Assembly (NCBI GenBank): GCA_950097015.1
Contig: CATNEN010000001.1
Coordinates: 868,001-932,000 of the forward strand
DNA: 64,000 nucleotides
Direction of reading: 5' to 3'
Source of the DNA: Macrostomum hystrix
Taxonomy: Eukaryota > Animalia > Platyhelminthes
In this document: positions 39,600 through 51,688 of the stretch, one piece after another
Position numbering within the stretch: position 1 is the stretch's first letter
Layout: every line of letters begins with the position of its first letter
The notes under the pieces: model-generated
Database searches by the model: none
What the model was told of the DNA's origin: nothing
Seen by the model: only the letters and a program-made list of their open reading frames with translations
Position numbers and translations under genes: made by a program

Positions 39600-42161
39600 C
39601 GAGAGTACATGTAGGGCCTTTGGCCCTCGGGGCTTAAATAAATACATCCCTAAACTCTATGTGTTATCTTCTACATACAAACTGGCACGTAGCCTCGCCC
39701 ATGCACGATAAGTGCGCTTTCCTATTCTAACGAAAGCTAAGCCAATTGACTGCGGCTCACTTTCATGACACGGTCGCCCAGCTACATCGACCTGTTTTTT
39801 GCACATCATAGGCACATAAGCCAAGCAAATATAAAATATACAAATAGACGCCTGGCTAGTTAGTCAAAAATAAACTTTCCCTAGTATCTGAGAGAATTCT
39901 GGCACCTTTAATGAATTGGGAGCTATTCTCGACAAAATTAACTCGGATATATGTTGGGATGTCCGAGATATATTGTGTCAAATGATTTTTTCGTGAATTT
40001 TTCTTCTTGGCATGAAATCGGCGTGGATTTAAAAAAGATTCCATAAGAATTAAGTTTTATTATTTAAATAATAGTAATAATAACCTTGGAATTTATCCAA
40101 AGCAATCAATGTCAATAATAATACTGCTATCAGCGAGCTTTTATTTTGATAAACTAAAAGTAGAACCTGCGAATGTCCCAATCCTCCTGTCATCCAGGTC
40201 CATCCAGGATTGGTATCCATGCCATATTAATTTGGTAAGTTCAAAATGAATAATGACTTGAATATTATAAATGAGGCTAACATCTTTGAGATGTGTAATG
40301 CTAATATTATTGCCTTTAAGAAACTTAGCTCTTAAATACTGATAGGGAGTGATAGCTTTGATACTACAAAGCTCTGTAGCTCTCTTCTCTTGATGATGTT
40401 AGTGTTTATTGTAGATGCCTTAAAAATTAACACAGCTTAAATATTTTCGAGGCCTTCTTGTAGCAAATAAAAATAGTTTAATTGCCAATTTTTCCATCAC
40501 CCTAATATTAGTTACCACATGTAGCTATAATATAATAATTATACTTGAGCATAGAATTTTTGTCCTAAGCCTTTTCCTAGTCAATTGATTCTTTATTATT
40601 CTTTATAATATATTTTTCATTAATAGTGGTTATAGCATTTATATAGACTACTCATTTGTGCTAATTAATGATTATATTTCTGCTTAATTTTGTGGGCAGG
40701 ACTATTTTAGGAATGGCCTATCCTATGCCTGCTGTTGGGCTGGGCCATAGACAGAATAAAAGCAAAAACAATTATATTTAATGGAGTACTGCAGTGCAGA
40801 AAAGTACAACAGTAATGATAAGAGCAGTAACAATAATAACAAACAGAGGGGAGATGAAACAATACACAATTAGCCACACCCATAGTTTAAGTAGGCTTAG
40901 ACAGACTGTGTTAAATGTAATTTCTCTGTTCAAACCAGCAAGAAACCGGAGACACTCACAGGCGGGTCCGTGGAAATGCCGAAACGGACGAAACGGACCG
41001 AAACGGACCGAAACGGGCCGAAACGGACCGAAACGAACCGAAATGGGCCGAAACGGACCGAAACGGACCGAAACGAACCAAAACGGACCGAAACGAACCG
41101 AAACCAACCAAAGCGGACCGAAACGGACCGAAACCAACCGAAATGGACGAATCGGGAGACTTAACTTCAGAATCTATATGCATATATGTAACGTGTACCT
41201 GATGTTGATGTCGGATTTTTTCCCTTTCAAACTCGCGCCTGATTGGGGACTGGGAACTGAAGCCTGATTAACAAAGTCGGGGGGGGGGCGAATAATAACA
41301 ATAATTGCAGGAGGGCAGTGGGCTCACTGGCGCAGCACGTTTGGCGTCATCGTCCCACAGCCAGCGGGGAGGCAATTCTGCCCATTCCGCTGACTCCTGG
41401 GGGGTTTCTTATGAAAGTATTCTCTATGCTTAATGCTGAAAATGTGCATCAATTAGGCGGAAATTGGTGTACATTTTCAGCATAAAGCATATGATATAGG
41501 TATTTCTTCTAGCTATTCATGTAACTATTTTCCGGTGTAAATTTCCGGGTTTTACGTTTAAACCTCGTAACATCTTTGTGCAGCAACCTCACTCCCCCGT
41601 GCTATATATACGAGCCAATTCTATCGCAAGAAAATTCATCGCTTCATCCCTTTGGTATAAGCTTGCTATAAGCTAAGCTTGTTGGTATAAGCTTGCCTCC
41701 CTTGTCCAGTCCAGCTTTCGCGCCCCGGCCGTGCCTTTTGCCTATTTCGCTTTCTCCGCTTTGCCGCCACGTGCGCACGCCAGCTATAGCTTTACTACCC
41801 TTTCCACTGGCAGTGCCGATCGCCCCTTTCTCACCTGCCTAGATCCTTTCCATCTGCCTTCCGTCTCTCAGCTTGTGAGTGAGCGCCCGGTTCCCCCCGG
41901 CTAGGCATGTACTCACCTGTTGTCTGTCGGTTGGCACCTCCCCCTCCCTGCGCTAGCAGGCTCACTGTGTCCCTTAGCTTAGCTTAGCTAGTCATAGTGA
42001 ACTTTAGACACCAAATAGCTTTCATTGCACTTAGACTTTAGTCTTTCTGTCTATTTTGACGGTAAATAGCAACTTTTACATTTATTTATTTTATTATTAT
42101 AACATATTTACATAGCAAGCATAGAATAGAAAGTCTCCACATTAGCAAATCTCGCTCGGGC

Positions 42162-42806
42162 ATGAGCAGCAACGGCAGTCGACCTCCGGCCAGGTCTTCA
42201 GCGGCATCGGCGTCGAAGAAGCCAGGTGCAGAGCTCATCCCCGGCCCTCCAGCCACTTCATCCAAGCGCCAGCGGCCGTCGAACTCCCGTGCCAGTCTAG
42301 AGTCGGCAGCAGCAGCGGCCGCCAAGAAGCCTAAGGCCGTACCAGGGCGATCCTCGATCCCCGGCCGTCCCAGCGATTCCAACTGTGCAAGCGACTCCGG
42401 TCACGAGAAGATCGTTGAGCACCCGGCCGAGTCTGCTGAGACCGCCGAGACGACCCTCCGAGACGACTCCCCGATCGAGATAGACACCGACATCGCTTCG
42501 GCTGACGGTACCGTTGGAGCCGACGGCGCGAGACCTGAATTTGCGACTCCTCCGACCTCGCCTTCAACTTCTGGCACCGGTACCGGCAATCTTGAAAGAG
42601 TAGTGAGTGGGGAAGCTGTTTCTGCCGCTCCAAGCCCACTTGGTCTAGTGCCCATCAACACCTCGGGTCTTACCTCCACATCCTTTGTCAATGATCGCTG
42701 TCTGGTCGACTACTACCCAAACGCTTTCTCTTCTCTTGCCGATGACCTTCTTGAAACTATCAAATCCGAACTAGAGCCAAACATTGTTGTACTCGTAGTA
42801 CATTAA
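42162..42806 (+). CDS. S/P/A-rich 214-aa ORF inside the MULE; probably a truncated retroelement ORF1/gag N-terminus or captured cargo
   Basis: GC-rich ORF with an ATG start, preceded by a pyrimidine-rich UTR-like stretch (41640-42160). No recognisable domain. Confidence 0.4.
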   Translation: MSSNGSRPPARSSAASASKKPGAELIPGPPATSSKRQRPSNSRASLESAAAAAAKKPKAVPGRSSIPGRPSDSNCASDSGHEKIVEHPAESAETAETTLRDDSPIEIDTDIASADGTVGADGARPEFATPPTSPSTSGTGTGNLERVVSGEAVSAAPSPLGLVPINTSGLTSTSFVNDRCLVDYYPNAFSSLADDLLETIKSELEPNIVVLVVH

Positions 42807-44557
42807 CATTGCGCGCATTGAATTGCTAATACTCTGTAGCGAATTGGCCGCACAAGCCTATCTTACAGCATAATCGAATTCAAAACACGAAGGCACAAGG
42901 CTTGCAGTAACTATACATGTATCTGAATTGATGAAAATTTATATACCGCCGAAGGTCGACTCCACTAGAATTTCAACGATGCTGAAGTACATGTAATAGA
43001 ATGTTTATACTGTAGTTAATCGATTTTACTCATTGCGCTCCGATATACGTTTTAAAAATAATTTGGAACGAAAAAATGTAAGATAAAATTATTGAAAGTT
43101 TTTTTCGAAAAACGGTTTAGTTAAGAGCAGTTTAATTTCAGCAAGTCAAAGAGACTCAAAGAGATGGTAAGAAAAAGGCAAACAAAAACCTTTTTTGCAA
43201 AAAGCATCTTTCATAGACATAAAAGTCAATGTGGTTGATAAATTTGGTTGTGGTTGATAAAAGCGAGGTGAAGACACTGACAGGTAGTACGAATCTATAA
43301 AGTCAATTCCGTTGGGCTGACAAAACGTTACTGGCACAATTTAAAAGCGGCACAAATCGGCAAGTCAAGTGAGAATAGCAAAAATTGATTAAAAGCAGCA
43401 GAACGACAGCAGAAAAAGCAAAACTTATAAGCAAGAATAATGTAAAAATGCAGTGAGCGCCAAAATGTACACATGGAAGCCAGCGGTGCAAAATAAAGTG
43501 TGCGACCCGACAGCAAGACTTACAGTATATAAAGCAAAACTGACGATCCAAAAGATGGTAAAAAATCTTTCACGCGTTTCTTCAGCAGGAAATGTCAGGC
43601 AAAATCGACAACTAAAAGCAGCAGATAGCAATACAAAAATAATCAGAACGAAAGTAAGGTAGGTTGGGAAACTTATCCCAAAGGAAGAAATTAATTTCCA
43701 TGAAGCTATTGAGAGAATGTCAGGTGCTTCTCAATGTGGCAGCCACCCAGGGGAATAGCCCACCCAGAACCGATAGGCTCCGGTGCTTGTGCACTTCTCT
43801 CTCTCTCTCTCTCTCTCTTAAATTGCAGCAGCTAAAATCTTTACTTCTTACTCAGTAAAGTAATCAATTAGCGTTTTACTATACTTGACTCCGTTCACTC
43901 AGCAAGGGAATCTGAATTGATGGACTTAAGATACAGTGCATGAATGCAAGGGTGGTTTGGAATCATGTTGGCCCAATGCTTTGAAATTCATCTTTAGCAA
44001 AAAAACATGTTGACACTGGTGGGCTGGTAGACGTTGTTTAGCATGAAATAGAAGTTGAGGTTGCAGTTGAAGACTAATGGTCCTTATGTGAAGTACATCA
44101 CATTCATAATAAGCAGGATAAAATAAAATGCAAATGCAAACAGCTTTCCACGACAGCATCATACAGCTAGTAAGTAGTACATGTATAGTAGGAAACACAG
44201 CTGGCAAAAAAATAATTTGCACACTTAAAAATTCCTATATGTACTTACTGTAACAGTCAGACAGTTGCATATGAGATGGTAAACAAAAAGTGGCTGGTGC
44301 AGTAGAAATATGGTTAGGCAGGGGTAAGTAAATGAACAATAATTGGAAATACAAAGCACACTAGATAGTCAGTCGTAGGATTACCGTCGCTGTCTATAAA
44401 AATGGTCATATGGTTTAGACTGTGATGGTCACTGGCACTGGCATGTGCATGGGATTTCTATCGGGATAAAAACGAATATTCGAACTAAGCACACAAATAT
44501 ATAGCTAGAAATGCAGCGCTGCACTTATTCCTGTCATTGTCAAATTAGCTGACACAT

Positions 44558-47500
44558 TTATCGAAACTGAGTCGCTCGCTCTGCCTTCTGTCGTCGCTTC
44601 TGGTGGGGCTTCTTACCAGCAGATGGTTTCCTCATAGTTTTGAACCTGCCATTGGTAGATGTGAACACTCCTTCATCCTTAATCATTCGAAAGCACTTTT
44701 GGAAAGCTGCATCTCTTTGTTTTTTTGACATTTTCTTCCAAGCATCGAGAGTGATTTGATGATGTACATACATACAGGACAGTCGAAACTCGCCAAAGCC
44801 GATGAGAGCTCTTTCTGCTTCTAAATGCTGCTGCCTCGATAGCTCCTCCAAGCGAAAAATCAAGTCAGGAAGGTTTCTTGGTGTCCAACTTATTTTCATC
44901 TTCAAAACGTGATTCAGCGACTCAGCATTGTTGGTCGTCCACAAGTGACGCTCGCAGACAATGCTTTCTCGCAACAGTGGTAGCACGTGTGAGGCACAGT
45001 ATTTCGCAAATGCTGGGATTGCACTTCGCATTTCATGTATAAGCTGTGCCACAGCAGCATCAAAAACAGTCACTGTATTAGAGTTGGCAAGTCCATGTGT
45101 ACCGAAAATTTGTGAAATAATTTTCTTTCGTTCGTACTTATCAACACCACATGTGTCTGATAGCTGCCTTTTGGCATTGTCCTTCAAATGCTTTGTACAT
45201 GCCACTGTAAACGCGTATGGAAAGGAATGCATCATTGCCTTACGCATCCCCAGCTCAGCATCCGATCCAAGAATAATCTTCTTTTGAGGTGAATGTTCCA
45301 GCATCAAAGATAAATGGCTGAAGAAGTAGTTATATGTCGTGGCATCAGAATTGCCATGTAAAAAGATTGGCCCCATAAAAATGGGGGTATCTCCTGTTGA
45401 TTTGCGATACAAAGCCAAGTTCTGATACGAACTAGGGGTAACAAAAACAGAGCCCAGATTGTATGTTTTGTCGAATGACAGTACACTTGCGTTGGAACCG
45501 CAGCAGAATTCTTTAACGTCTCGCAGTTGCTTATCTGTGTACAGAACAGCGCAAGGCGGCCTTCCATGTGGGTGAATTACATGTCGTACAAATTCATTCA
45601 TTTGAAGCATTTCAACGACAGCCAACCACTCGTCTGCAGGGTTTGCGAATGGCACCCTGTGCCCCGAAGCATTTTTACGATTTGCATCTCTTACTTGTTG
45701 AAGATTACGAGGAGACTTCTCACTCTCTTCCAAATTGTCCTTCACTAACTTAGCATAAACTTCTCTAGGTGGAAGCGACTTCAGCATCTCCTTCATTTTC
45801 TGTATAGTTTCTTCTGGTGTTCGAATGAAGTGTGAATCTTCTGCACTATCGTTCCCATGCTGCTTGTGTCCTGGGAATGTACCTGCGTATTCAAAAATGG
45901 CAATTGAGTGTGCTGCACTCTCAATCCAAGTAATCCGGCGACGATAGCTCGAAGCAGATTGTGAGCCAAATTTCAAACTTGAATAATGGTGCACAAAAGT
46001 AACAACGTCTTCCTTCAATGGCTGTGGAGATAGTGGAACATAGTAGCGTTTGTTACTGCACTGAAATTCAGTGCAGTATTTTTCTTCTTTACGATGCAAT
46101 CGAGATCCAAGACGATTACTTGCACATAAATATGGAACTCTAATAGTAGGCGAATTTGATGAGACCCACGCTCCACAGTCATCCCAAAAAAGGCTTTTCT
46201 TGCCACCCAGTCGACGCTGTATATTGTCAGTGTTGTCAACCACGAAGTATACATTGTCCTTTTTTCCAGTCGGAACTGATTTTAGGGCATTCTCTATCCC
46301 GGTTGTAGTCAAAACCTCATAAACTTTTTGGCCAGACATGAATTTTCCTCCTGGTAGACTAGAATCAGTTCCATAATCAGTAAACAGGTTTGACTCGTCG
46401 GCGATGTAATCATTCTTCCTCTTTGCATTCTTTGGATCTGAGTCAGAATTGGATTGCTTCTCATCATCGGTGCTCATTGATTCGTCCGCTCTTCTTCTTG
46501 TGTCCTTGTACTTCTTTCTTTTTGACTTCTGCGAACTTGAAGTGCCATTCTCCTCCACCCCAGCATCATCGCCTGCAGCTTCATTCTCTCTCTTTGTGCC
46601 TTTCTTCTTCTTTGACTTCTGCGAACTTGAAGCGCCACTCTCCTCCACCCCAGCATCATCGCCTGCAGCTTCATTCTCTCTCTTTGTGCCTTTCTTCTTC
46701 TTTGACTTCTGCGAACTTGAAGCGCCACTCTCCTCCACCCCAGCATCATCGCCTGCAGCTTCATTCTCTCTCTTTGTGCCTTTCTTCTTCTTTGACTTCT
46801 GCGAACTTGAAGCGCCACTCTCCTCCACCCCAGCATCATCGCCTGCAGCTTCATTCTCTCTCTTTGTGCCTTTCTTCTTCTTTGACTTCTGCGAACGCGT
46901 CTTGTCCTTGTCCCCCACTCCAGCACCATTGTCATTCGCTGCCTCTTCACTTTCCTGCGCATTCTTCTCTTCAGCCCTCCTCGCATGCGACTCACCTTCG
47001 TCACTCCCAACTTCACCATCCTTTTCGCCATCATTCCTCGAGTCGTCAACTCGTGAGTTCTCACTATAGTCCTCTGCCCCCTCCTCATCCATCTCAACAC
47101 TTGTTGGTGACTCATGTGTTGCATCGACTATTCGTATGAGTGGAATGACATGGTTCGCAACGAGTGCAGTTGCCTTGGCTGGAACGTGCGAAAAGTGAGA
47201 CCACATTAATGTGATTACCGGACTGCATGGACGGCGGACACCACGACCACACACAAGGCGTGTGTATGGATGCTGGTCACAAGAAATAAGAGCATTTGGT
47301 GGATGATATGACTGAATCGCTTTACCAATGGCAGCACTCAGTGCAAAGAAGTGAATCATCTCTGCATAGGAGCCAGGAGTAACAGCACTCATCATTACAT
47401 CTAGAAATGGTGGTGTATAGATCCGACAGTCATTTATTAGATCAGTAAAGTTTGCTGCTTCCAAATCATAGAATGATCTGTTGTCAATCAACTCTAGCCC

Positions 47501-49203
47501 AATTCGCAAACGAAGGTACAGATGGTGCTCCTGTGTGCCATAGAGAGCCAGGGAGGCTGCACGATAAAAACAGTTGCCATCCCCAGCAACAGCTGCAGGG
47601 TGGTACAAATTGAGTACACATGGCTGGAACAGCAGCAAAATCTTCTTGGCAATATCATCAGTACCAGTCTTATCGGTGCCAGCATTTCCAAAGATGACCT
47701 CTTGAAGTTGTGGTTCTACAAAGTATGTCGCCAGCAGAAGTTGTTCGCGCTCACTAGCAGACATAGCCACTGAAGTCTGTAGCCTGAAATTGTTGAAACA
47801 AAAGAAAGTAGCAACTTTTATGTTGAATTTGAGCTAGCTGACTTGCAAAATCCACTGGAAATGCTTTATACAAGTTTATCAAGATTTCTATCATGCACTA
47901 TAGCAGACTGTAGCAGTTCTCAATCTGAGCTTTATGATACATTTAGAATTGCATGTAATCTATTAAGAGAATGTAGAAAAATGATCCAGATATGAGTAAT
48001 TCCTTGAATATGTCATATGACAGTGAAGTTGAAGTTTTAGTTTTCCTTTGCAACTACTTACTGCTTACTACTATACTACTAAGTACAGTATATATTTTTT
48101 TCCCATTTTTTTATCAAAAGCCCTTAGGGTAAAACATCATCAACCAAACCATTCAAGAGAAATGAAAGTCATATTTATCTTTCATGTGATTCTTCCTAAC
48201 TATTTTATTCATTTGTTATGATATTTCAAGTTCTATGATGCCTTTACTATGCCAAAATGAAAAACAGAACATCGGATTCTTTGTTCAGCTTGACAATGCA
48301 TGAAAATTGTTGCTTGGTTTTGATAGAAAGTGGTCTATTACCTCTTTCAACTTAATTAACTGCTTTGGATAAAACAATATTCTTCAAAAAGAAAAATATT
48401 AACTTTCTGCAACTTTGGGTTAGCTTCACTTTGATATGAAGCATACTGAAAGTTTAATAAAAGGTTGAATATATAAAATCATTGATTTCTTGTTTGGTTG
48501 ATGACTTTTACCCCATTCTCTATTTTTATAGAATATGCTTTCCACCATTTTATATCACTGTTGATGAAGAAGCCCACTAGAGTTCAGTTCCACCATAACT
48601 AAAATTTTCCCATATCCATATCTATATCCATAACCTCTTAATTTTCCCATAGCCTATCCATATCCATATCTTTTATGAAAAAATCCATATCTGTAACTTC
48701 TCATAGACATATCCATAGCTATGGCAGAACTCTAAAGCCCACCATTTGTAAGGTCTACTCTCTCTAGCACTACCACAAAGAACATCAATTTGATTCTAAT
48801 CAAGATGCAAGTCATAGGCCTAGGGACTAGCATAAGTCATAAGGGAAGAATCTTAAGATAGACAAAATGTATAATTTTATATACATCTGGTGGGGCACAG
48901 CACTGTGATTAGGCCACGAGGCCCCTGCAGCAATAGAATTTTGTGAATTTAATATGAAGACCACACTACAGCATTTACTCACCTAGAGAGAGCACCCTGA
49001 ATGTCATATCCTCCATCGTTGATGTGGACACACGTGGGACAAAGGAAGTCTGCATTTGAGGAATCCCACTTAGCAAACAACACTTCGCTCATTGCAAGAC
49101 ATGTTCGATGGCTCCAACACTGGCATCCACAACAATAGATTGTATCGTCAGCGCATTCAAGACCACACCCAGTGCAGGGGTACATAGGACTCCGAATCCT
49201 CAT
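44558..49203 (-). CDS. PHD finger + vertnin-like OTU protease + MULE DDE transposase; exons 49203-48983 and 47783-44558 (about 1148 aa)
   Basis: Exon 1 has a C4HC3 PHD (CTGC..CCGCQCWSHRTC..CPTC). AG|gtgagt..tttcag|G joins in frame. OTU motifs GDGNCFYRA..LMWS..NHVIPL. MULE motifs SFDKTYNLG, GSDAE, CTKH, TTNNAESLNHVLK. Confidence 0.88.
46520..46900 (-). repeat. 90-bp in-frame coding tandem repeat, 4 copies, in the MULE linker
   Basis: Repeated peptide SQKSKKKKGTKRENEAAGDDAGVEESGASS. Confidence 0.95.
48127..48514. mobile_element. MITE in the MULE intron
   Basis: Imperfect TIRs gggtaaaacatcatcaaccaaac / gtttggttgatgacttttacccc. Related copy at about 8.1-8.4 kb. Confidence 0.7.
48578..48734. mobile_element. 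157-bp hAT-type MITE in the MULE intron
   Basis: TIR tagagttc / gaactcta, 8-bp TSD aagcccac (48570-48577 and 48735-48742), internal atatcc repeats. Confidence 0.8.
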
Positions 49204-51688
49204 AGCACACTGCTAGGATCTTTACCGTCTTGATTGAAATGTGGCTTGGTGATTTGATAGTCTGCACGTGGCGGTCCAAAATCGAATACTGTAAGTTTAA
49301 TTTGTTAACTGCTCCTGTAAGTTAGTTTAAACAAAGTGTTGCACAAAGAACTCACGATTGATTTGAAAAAGCGTATGGTATGTAAACTGAAGCTTCTTTT
49401 AAAACGACCCGTAATAGTATACAATAAGCAAGGGTTGAAATTCTATTCTAAGCACAAAGGCAATGACGACTCGATATATGCAACTGCAACGGCATTACAA
49501 AATACAGAAAACACACACCCTAATATCGCACGTACGGTAGCTATTGATCGCACTCCCTCACACCGATGTTGCTTCACTTTGCACGGCGGATGCTTTAATC
49601 AGCCATAGTTTGCCCTCGATCAATAATTTTGTCATTTTCAGGTTCCAGTTGGTCCGTTTCGGTTTGTTTCGGTCCGTTTCGGTCCGTTTCGGTCCGTTTC
49701 GGTCCGTTTCGGTCCGTTTCGGTCCGTTTCGGTCCGTTTCGGTTTGTTTCGGCCCGTTTCGTCAGTTTCGGCATTTCCACGGACCGCTCACAGGCAGGAA
49801 GAATAACAGGCAACTGCCATTATTTTCTAGTACAGCAGTTGGCAGAACTCCAAGAATGTCACTACACCATTTTACCCTCAATTTTGAACAAAAGTAACTT
49901 CTATAGTAACAAACTACACATCAATTTTGATAGTCTATCACTTTGAAGGAAAAACTATATTCTATTTTGACAAAGGCACCCAGTGTTTAAAATATCGTCC
50001 AGGCGGACTCTGATTTTTTGGGTCCGCCAGACTCCACTTTTTAGTCTATTGTATGCCTAACTTTAGTCGAAAAGACGTCCACTTTCGGCCAATAGATGAC
50101 CAATTTCGGACCATTGCAAAATGTTGTAAATACTAAGTCTATTAGTAGTGTAGCTCTGAATGAAAAATTGTATTCATTATTCTCTCGTATTCCGTATTGA
50201 ACATGAACAAAAAGAATTTGATTTTCTTATTTAAAAATGAATCTCTTTGTATGCTTTTTTAATTTTAGTTGCAAATAAATTACTCATTACATAAATCCAT
50301 AATAAATTAGATTTGCAAGTTTTAAAAGAAGAACAATTTGGAATAGAAGTAAGCAAGACAGATCTTGCTACAAAATTAGGATTTTTGAAAAATTACACAC
50401 AAGAATACAGAAGGCAAAGTATAAAATGCCTTGGCAGGAATACAACACACAATAGGCAGCATAGACATAAGGTCAAAAAGTTACAAGTTTAAATGCACAG
50501 CAATAAATATCATTGTGTACTATACGCAACATAAATAACTAAGCGGATTTCTAAAGCATGTTGGGAAATAATTATGATGTAGACCAAAAGCTAGTATGTT
50601 TGAAAATGTGAGACTTTTCCTATTTTTGTTTAAATTACGTATATTTGTTTTAACGCGAAAATAGTTGTTTGAATACACTGTAAATATTTGTTTAAAACAA
50701 TACGAAAATTAGTATAAATACAGGAGCAAAAGCGAGAGAAAAATTAACCTTGTTCAACGCAACTTGAAACAAAGTTAGTATACAATACTCAGAATCGTGT
50801 TCTTTCATTCTTTATAAAACATACGGAGACAAATATTAAGTAAGACTCAAGAGAGAGAAGTAGGAAGTATTGCTGTATACTTGAGATCATTGGTAACACT
50901 CTTCGAAAAGCCTATACTCAGAAATACACATGAGATAAAGTAATCGGCCAGAATAACTAAATACACTACCTAGACTAACTAAAGACGATATTCAAGGATA
51001 ACTAAATACACTACCAAGAAATTCTTTTAAATATATAAAATACATTCTCAGAAATTAATTCTAAGAAAATATAGAACATTAGCAATATAAAATACAACAA
51101 CATTGTGAGAGTAGAAGTAAGAATAATAATTAGTACTAGAACACCTGTGGTGACATTCAGTGGAAGAATAAATATTATAAAATAACCCTAGGACAATTAA
51201 AAGGAAGAGGAATAATTTTTATACGTCACAAATGTTGTGTTCCGACACAGAAGTCTTAAGTTTCTAGATGCTAGGAAGGATATAGAGCAGCTGTGTAGCT
51301 ATAAGTGCTCTTTAGTACTCGTTTATTAATCGTGTCCATAGACATAAATCAAACACACAGAGAATGAGTCTATCATAACATAACATCTCCCTTCTTAAGA
51401 GGGATTCCTGTATGTAATAAAAATAAATCCTATTTCCGGAAGTTCTGTTCTACACTTTTTCAATCAATGTGCCTGAAATCGCACGACTGGCTTCACCACA
51501 CGTCCACTTCGTGTCGTATAGCCATGCGTATCAGTTGTCCTAGGTGACTGACATTGTTGAGCATTAGGTGCTTGTACTGATGGTTTGCTTCCTCCATTTT
51601 CCTCCACTGCTTCGTGTTGATCCGGTTGACTTTGAGAAGCTTTCAGTGGTGCGGCAATTTCCATTCCCAATGCGTCTTTAAGGTTTTC

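Follow-up and report, generated by a model that had tools for sequence, protein, structure and literature searches.

A Mutator-like transposon of the flatworm Macrostomum hystrix with a predicted N-terminal PHD-OTU cassette on its transposase

A 64,000-bp stretch of the genome of the flatworm Macrostomum hystrix (positions 868,001 to 932,000 of the forward strand of contig CATNEN010000001.1, GenBank assembly GCA_950097015.1), referred to here as the window, was analyzed to follow up an original prediction made from its sequence. Positions 40964-49786 (window coordinates, as throughout) constitute an 8823-bp Mutator-like element (MULE), which, with a probability of about 0.8, is an autonomous Mutator/MULE DNA transposon that is active or was active very recently, and whose transposase carries an N-terminal cassette composed of a PHD finger and an OTU cysteine protease. 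The original prediction had described the element as intact, and this description holds: a target-site duplication (TSD), terminal inverted repeats (TIRs), a DDE catalytic core, and an intact reading frame were all found.

Boundaries, copies and mobility of the element

A perfect 9-bp TSD, CTCACAGGC, directly borders the element, with one copy at 40955-40963 on the left and an identical copy at 49787-49795 on the right, as had been claimed. The matching TIRs were likewise recovered as arms at 40965-41099 and 49651-49785 (135 nt, 90% complementary), and the outermost 22 nt of the two ends are identical except for the very last base. Both arms are arrays of a 10-bp unit, CCGAAACGGA, present in 17.1 copies on the left (40979-41148, Tandem Repeats Finder) and 12.2 copies on the right (49651-49771). 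The left TIR as a whole (40964-41150, plus strand) thus begins with the terminal sequence GGGTCCGTGGAAATGCCGAAAC and continues with about 17 such units, while the right TIR (49641-49786, minus strand) consists of about 12 units and the terminal 22-mer. These 10-bp repeats are probably binding sites for the transposase.

A six-frame search of the genome (220 Mb, 42 contigs) identified four copies of the element, on contigs C1 (the window copy), C32, C38, and C25, all of which align end to end. Any two of them differ at only 5-10 positions over 8.7 kb (99.88-99.94% substitution identity). Exactly eight occurrences of the terminal 21-mer were counted in the 220-Mb genome, one at each end of every copy, with zero control matches, and the search with this 21-mer disclosed no non-autonomous or MITE-like (miniature inverted-repeat) derivatives with these termini in the genome. 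The original prediction had proposed looking for copies with different TSDs; the four loci carry four separate TSDs of 9-10 bp, namely, CTCACAGGC (9 bp) at the window copy and CCGTATTGGG, GGAATACAAG, and TTGTTTTTTA (10 bp each) at the others, and their flanks all differ. Duplications of this length, together with the long TIRs, conform to the Mutator/MULE superfamily, in which TSDs span about 8-11 bp. The different flanks and the different TSD at each of the four copies rule out a haplotig or an assembly artefact as the origin of the copies.

The insertion history of the window copy could be traced further. Its flanks (40675-40962 and 49795-49864) belong to an older dispersed repeat that has at least six paralogues in the genome (86-93% identity), and in these paralogues the two flanks are contiguous. 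The locus at G000:C34:2852427-2852779, for example, represents a paralogous empty site, and the existence of such a site confirms the insertion. Three of the four copies keep an open transposase frame. The long frame is intact and identical in the copies on C1 and C32; it is also intact in the C25 copy, where the region encoding the linker of the protein is shorter by one 30-amino-acid (30-aa) repeat. The C38 copy is shorter by one repeat in the same region and has, in addition, a 1-bp deletion that breaks the long frame.

Transposase gene and its predicted domains

The transposase gene lies on the minus strand and is predicted to comprise two exons. Exon 1 (48983-49203; 221 nt, 73 codons, ATG at 49203-49201) sits within an open reading frame (ORF) of 74 codons at 48979-49203(-) and encodes a Pygopus-like PHD finger. 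Exon 2 (44558-47783, minus strand, stop at 44558-44560) consists of a 1070-aa ORF that starts at 47770 together with the 13 nt that lead up to the splice acceptor; this ORF, 44558-47770(-), has no stops and contains an in-frame ATG at its third codon. The predicted intron between them (47784-48982, minus strand) is 1199 nt long and has GTGAGT...TTTCAG boundaries, with the donor GT at 48982-48981 and the acceptor AG at 47785-47784 behind a pyrimidine tract. The frame of 1148 codons that had been proposed is reproduced by the splice model, in which exon 1 joins position 47783 in frame across canonical GT/AG sites.

Assignment of the PHD exon and exon 2 to one gene has good indirect support from sequence comparison. 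A PHD finger, an OTU domain, and a MULE transposase occur within one protein in Lingula anatina (XP_013388573.1), Branchiostoma floridae (XP_035685260.1), and the relatives P0025, P0018, and P0026. In these single-protein homologues, the distance from the PHD finger to the OTU Cys-box is 124-151 residues, versus 132 in the spliced model, and because the homologues encode all three domains in one protein with the same spacing, they indirectly back the spliced model. Furthermore, the proposed junction falls within the family consensus "ALxRL": the last residues of exon 1 are ...GALS, the split codon specifies R, and exon 2 starts with L.

The same observations bear on a different gene model, according to which the PHD exon lies outside the transposase mRNA, the enzyme consists of the OTU and MULE parts only, starting from about 47764, and the PHD ORF represents either a small gene of its own or a relic. 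The in-frame ATG at codon 3 of the long ORF, a splice junction without RNA evidence, and the many database relatives predicted without a PHD finger would all fit such a model. Many of those PHD-less entries, however, are short contig fragments, and the donor and acceptor are canonical and give an in-frame join. The zinc ligands are intact in a family of copies that has diverged by only 0.1%, and proteins from several phyla unite the three domains with matching spacing and with "ALxRL" bridging the junction. A transposase without the PHD finger is thus quite unlikely, and the two-exon gene is preferred.

Domain analyses were run on each exon separately. As a separate observation on this gene, a single 267-nt contig identical to 45553-45818, and nothing else of the element, was found in run X1, which comes from a different organism and study and whose kind is only guessed to be RNA; this contig could be a transcript fragment or could derive from a related strain or from contamination.

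With regard to exon 1, all eight C4HC3 ligands expected from the predicted PHD finger are present (C10, C13, C24, C27, H32, C35, C55, and C58), arranged as C10-x2-C13-x10-C24-x2-C27-x2-W30-x-H32-x2-C35-x19-C55-x2-C58, and these ligands as well as W30 are invariant in 14 sequences. The best sequence matches of the exon in the PDB (phmmer) are the PHD fingers of Pygopus 1/2 (E 4e-5), followed by DIDO1 and Pps. The Pfam PHD model matches the window protein with an E-value of 0.013 (16 bits versus a cut-off of 24) and the relative P0026 with 24.7 bits. Judged by this ligand pattern and these matches, exon 1 encodes a genuine Pygopus-type PHD finger, which, by analogy with its family, may bind the histone H3 tail.

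The OTU cysteine-protease domain (Pfam PF02338, MEROPS C85-like) occupies 47126-47653 (minus strand; ORF residues ~40-215). The D-x-x-C motif and distal His that had been noted are present as D64-G-N-C67 and H207 (codons at 47579-47581 for D64, 47570-47572 for C67, and 47150-47152 for H207) and are conserved among relatives; the Cys-box reads GDGNCFYRA and the His-box ANHV in the window protein. In 31 relatives with 26-40% identity, D64 and N66 never vary, and at least 90% of these proteins retain C67 and H207. A PDB sequence search with the GDGNCFYRA region returned only OTU proteins as top matches (nairovirus OTU, OTUD7B, OTUD1, and VCPIP1), and a protein atlas returned only OTU clusters (0.93). 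In Pfam, OTU matches the window protein with an E-value of 0.011 and 16.7 bits, versus a cut-off of 23.3 that relatives pass with up to 35 bits.

Structure prediction, which had been proposed as a check, was carried out with AlphaFold2 (AF2) as separate models, in which the OTU region folds as an OTU domain and the C-terminal part of exon 2 as an IS256-like transposase. The OTU model has a mean predicted local distance difference test (pLDDT) of 88.8 and a predicted template-modeling score of 0.86. Foldseek matched it with a probability of 1.00 to OTUD3, OTUD1, VCPIP1, OTUD5, Cezanne, A20, otubains, and nairovirus and other viral OTUs; all 34 matches at E<=1e-3 among those listed are OTU deubiquitinases, with template-modeling scores of at most 0.75 (target-normalised). 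As judged from the alignment and the model, both the OTU fold and its catalytic centre are intact and have been constrained over the long term.

Such constraint is relevant to the notion that the OTU domain, the PHD finger, or both are inert passengers left from an old gene capture, with no part in transposition. The activities of both are predictions, the Pfam scores of the window copy are below threshold, and vertnin illustrates that an OTU fold can persist without catalysis (PMC10318531). Against this, the catalytic D/C/H residues and all eight zinc ligands vary little or not at all in a clade whose members are only 30-40% identical, and because these positions are conserved clade-wide, long-term purifying selection on function is indicated. 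The passenger explanation is therefore very improbable, and a functional cassette is the preferred reading.

A charged linker (46286-47125, minus strand) separates the OTU domain from the downstream domains, as the original prediction had stated: it is an acidic/basic, low-complexity stretch of ~280 aa, disordered and repetitive. It includes a coding minisatellite at 46516-46896 with 90-bp (30-aa) units in 4.2 copies (98% matches), and the copies on C25 and C38 have one unit fewer. Because these copies differ by one unit, the minisatellite evidently changes faster than point substitutions accumulate. KKKKGTKR motifs within the linker repeats appear to resemble nuclear-localisation signals.

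Downstream of the linker, a beta-rich pre-catalytic domain with the motif DDCGAW was delineated at 45851-46273 (minus strand; ORF residues ~500-640). In an alignment of 45 relatives, its P, G, K, N, D, D, and W residues are nearly invariant, and AF2 predicts confident beta strands. Many MULEs have a WRKY-GCM1/FLYWCH-type zinc finger upstream of the core, a feature that is typical but not universal; no match at E<=10 to WRKY, FLYWCH, FAR1, or SWIM was obtained in the window protein or the 45 relatives, and the position of such a finger is taken by the beta-rich region. This region, for which no other zinc finger or Pfam DNA-binding family was recovered either, is a putative DNA-binding domain. 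One relative, P0189 (Mytilus californianus LOC127734145 isoform X2), has three tandem beta-rich domains with 30-37% identity and lacks a DDE core; domestication or decay could have given rise to it.

A relation of the beta-rich domain to the CG-1 domain of CAMTA proteins was considered. The second repeat of P0189 passes the Pfam CG-1 model with 24.5 bits versus a cut-off of 23.5, and one of the 45 relatives matches with an E-value of 0.047. Homology to CG-1 was rejected as an assignment: in the genome, the Pfam CG-1 model misses the element, and both hhalign and a family hidden Markov model gave negative results against the CG-1 domain of the host CAMTA, so that the relation is a weak lead. 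The host CAMTA-like gene that served as the negative control for this idea (G000:C39:3747717-3747971; L013:4739-7381) has a CG-1 domain (48.8 bits) followed by ankyrin repeats within an 880-codon exon.

The MULE DDE core maps to 44891-45583 (minus strand). The D-D-CxxH-E arrangement claimed for it is found as D767 (FDKTY; 45470-45472), D837 (GSDAE; 45260-45262), C858xxH861 (45188-45199), and E950 (NNAESLN; 44921-44923), in agreement with the MULE signature (D ... D-x-E ... C/DxxH ... NxxESxN); all of these residues are invariant or nearly invariant in 45 relatives, and alignment positions D367, E369, C388, H391, and E480 are invariant in 45 sequences. For the window protein, Pfam Transposase_mut (PF00872) gives an E-value of 7e-4 (19-20.2 bits versus a cut-off of 21), and MULE (PF10551) gives an E-value of 0.012 (16.5-17.9 bits versus a cut-off of 27.6, which the relative P0003 passes with 32.9 bits). 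Among the 45 relatives, MULE is matched by 39 and Transposase_mut by 21, some of them above the curated cut-off. The AF2 model of residues 471-1070 has a pLDDT of 89.5, and the best structural match of the core model is the IS256-family ISCth4 transposase (E 2e-7), followed by the P element and Hermes transposases; IS256 is the bacterial relative of Mutator. Elsewhere in the same genome, a second and very distant MULE-like match with one internal stop lies at G000:C11:2610373-2611026 (L007), with 23% identity to residues 635-848.

Relatives of the element and other protease-bearing transposons

The domain architecture had been implied to be unique, which proved incorrect: an exhaustive HMMER scan with the exon 2 protein returned 4475 relatives at E<=1e-3, including single PHD-OTU-MULE proteins of Lingula and Branchiostoma, and 428 of the relatives score at E<=1e-30 (best E 1e-182, 40% identical). 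A word-index search with residues 1-225 had yielded no relatives; because the HMMER scan later found thousands, this blank result reflects a limit of sensitivity. The family of the element is thus widespread and represented in databases, though without a name, and protease-bearing Mutator elements are already known. The Lingula protein XP_013388573.1 and the Branchiostoma proteins XP_035685260.1 and XP_035659254.1 have the same three domains as the element, in the same order and with the same spacing. Identity over the transposase part is 33-37%, and Pfam OTU, MULE, and PHD are all recovered in them; they differ in being distant and in being annotated as host genes of unknown function.

In P0160, Ulp1/Peptidase_C48 is found at the N-terminus in place of the OTU domain, and an indicative tree places this protein within the PHD/OTU-bearing members. 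The distribution is best explained if a large animal clade of these transposases inherited the PHD-OTU cassette from its common ancestor. For annotation, the consequence is that entries labeled "uncharacterized protein" in Lingula, Branchiostoma, and Mytilus, as well as an entry in one bacterial bin of a metagenome-assembled genome (MAG), are transposases of this family. The bacterial entry, P0181, is an 858-aa OTU-MULE transposase deposited as "MAG: hypothetical protein [Sedimenticola sp.]"; it is probably eukaryotic host DNA that was binned into a bacterial MAG.

Accessory modules that combine a protease and a PHD finger have already been published for Ginger1 and Mutator transposases (PMC2836005). 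Ulp1 has been reported for Mutator elements from plants, hydra, and lancelet (PMC2836005). These KI-MULEs and other Ulp1-bearing Mutator elements (Arabidopsis, melon, rice, hydra, and lancelet) share with the window element the MULE DDE core, a cysteine protease for ubiquitin-like (Ubl) modifiers, a TSD of 9-10 bp, and long TIRs, and some of them also carry a PHD finger (PMC2836005). They differ in the protease, which is Ulp1/C48 in KI-MULEs, whereas that of the window element is an OTU (clan CA, ubiquitin-type); no match to Ulp1/Peptidase_C48 (PF02902) was obtained in the window protein at E<=1. Ginger1 elements (Hydra, Aplysia, and aphid) likewise join a transposase to OTU or Ulp1, sometimes with a PHD finger, and the ubiquitin pathway was proposed to take part in their transposition (PMC2836005). 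In contrast to the window element, with its IS256/MULE-type core and N-terminal PHD-OTU, Ginger1 has a Gypsy-integrase-type DDE core and C-terminal accessory domains. OTU is also carried as an accessory domain by Helitrons and Helentrons (PMC2836005; PMC6431247), but these have a rolling-circle Rep/helicase and no DDE core, TIRs, or TSD.

Within MULEs and their kin, an "OTU-superfamily" protease fused C-terminally has been described in Medicago, and C-terminal PHD fingers have been described in Ciona and C. elegans (PMC1702500). Rehavkus, a MULE-related group of arthropods and annelids, shares with the element a PHD finger, an internal minisatellite, and a 9-bp TSD, by description only (PMC6446971), and no OTU has been reported for it. 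Published surveys of MULE diversity do not mention OTU, and targeted full-text literature searches, whose scope did not extend to Repbase and Dfam, did not turn up any account of a MULE with an N-terminal PHD-OTU cassette.

The original prediction had also related the protease to vertnin, an OTU homologue with a papain fold that is reported to be without a catalytic site (PMC10318531) and for which an IS3/IS911-like helix-turn-helix has been reported in the literature. The OTU-like papain fold is common to both, whereas the element keeps D64, C67, and H207. Vertnin does not appear among the named relatives or the atlas or PDB matches, and the element as a mobile source of vertnin-like OTU domains is speculation.

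Proposed role of the cassette and remaining features of the element

A working scheme for the enzyme can be outlined from its predicted domains. The beta-rich domain would bind the arrays of 10-bp repeats in both ends, the DDE core would cut and paste the element, and the charged linker with its KKKKGTKR repeats would supply nuclear import. The N-terminal PHD-OTU cassette would be an accessory chromatin module, in which the PHD finger docks on the histone H3 tail. The OTU domain would act on chromatin or repair factors at the donor or target site, or on the transposase itself, by stripping them of ubiquitin or a Ubl, and this role would parallel that of Ulp1 in KI-MULEs and Ginger1. Such a read-erase-cut mechanism, which we infer in its entirety, is plausible.

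A predicted complex of the OTU domain with ubiquitin of the host genome scored 0.58, compared to 0.14 for the best control, which lends weak support to ubiquitin recognition. Of 78 solved complexes, 51 attain the mark for this rating, as do 2 of 108 mismatched pairs. The three runs have at least 87% of contacts in common, with a partner pLDDT of 83 or more. The host polyubiquitin itself (L015:1495-1722, G000:C41) encodes Pro19, Asp24, and Ser57, a combination that we take to lie between the usual animal and the plant/fungal ubiquitins.

The proteolytic activity could also be directed elsewhere, namely, at the linker, which a self-processing OTU would cut so as to release a PHD-OTU protein and a separate transposase. 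Polyprotein processing was proposed by Babu et al. for MULE transposases fused to an OTU-superfamily protease (PMC1702500). Viral OTU and papain-like proteases do process polyproteins, the sequence and structure searches both place the nairovirus OTU among the closest matches, and a disordered, repetitive linker of ~280 aa lies between the OTU domain and the remainder. However, no conserved Gly-Gly or other cleavage motif is present in this linker, which is of low complexity and varies in length among the four copies; the family does not share the RRLGG found at about residue 525; and the best structural matches are cellular deubiquitinases. P0160 has Ulp1, with another specificity, at the same position, which fits shared deconjugation better. 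OTU and Ulp1 differ in recognition and share the same chemistry, cleavage after the Gly-Gly of the modifier. Because the two proteases are interchangeable at the same N-terminal position, deconjugation is favoured over sequence-specific self-processing, which is unlikely.

Several points weigh against the interpretation of the element as an active transposon with a working PHD-OTU cassette. All four Pfam matches of the window protein fall below the curated cut-offs, so that the domain calls are based on relatives, on motifs, and on fold prediction. The His-box of the window copy has NHV, versus NHF in the family. The modifier removed by the putative protease could be ubiquitin, SUMO, NEDD8, or ISG15, and the OTU-ubiquitin score may reflect solved complexes of this kind that are known to the prediction program. 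Histone binding by the PHD finger is deduced from its family, the binding-site role of the 10-bp TIR repeats is likewise a deduction, and the tree that places P0160 has no support values. In four sequencing runs, the contigs are DNA-like, extend into the intron, and contain no splice joint, and no run on record as RNA was found; this leaves the predicted splice unrefuted. Finally, the sequence from the left TIR to the transposase gene (41151-44557, 3.4 kb) has no assigned role.

Mutator (Ulp1), Ginger1 (OTU or Ulp1), and Helitron (OTU) elements each acquired a protease of the ubiquitin/SUMO type independently, and to our knowledge nobody has shown what these proteases do in transposition. The element described here adds an OTU version to the Mutator superfamily, together with a Pygopus-type PHD finger, in the form of a cassette that is old, conserved over a large animal clade, and placed where OTU and Ulp1 replace each other at one position. 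It is tentatively proposed, as a possibility that falls short of even odds, that a PHD finger plus a ubiquitin/Ubl protease constitutes an ancestral, required, and interchangeable (OTU/Ulp1) chromatin module of a pan-metazoan MULE clade, which reads a histone mark and strips ubiquitin or SUMO. If true, the cassette would act at the site of transposition, licensing cutting or repair or evading silencing, and three intact copies about 0.1% apart would offer a live, tractable case for why transposon superfamilies recruit deconjugating proteases. Because the copies hardly differ and most of them are intact, excision and integration assays could realistically start from this element.

As for the remainder of the element, the region between the left TIR and the transposase gene contains an ORF for a 214-aa Ser/Pro/Ala-rich polypeptide at 42162-42806 (plus strand), opposite in strand to the transposase gene. 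A second gene in 41151-44557, this ORF included, was considered and rejected: no Pfam, tRNA, or Rfam match was obtained, and the atlas score of 0.76 is below the useful level. Apart from a short nested repeat, the genome has no copies of 41151-44557 outside the four elements. That repeat, of ~110 bp (41291-41399), occurs at more than 35 other genome loci with ~84% identity, and adjoins a palindrome with 30-nt arms (41425-41491). The combined segment (41291-41491) gave no tRNA or Rfam match; it is nested in all four copies of the element, and because of this, the repeat and palindrome are older than the spread of these copies.

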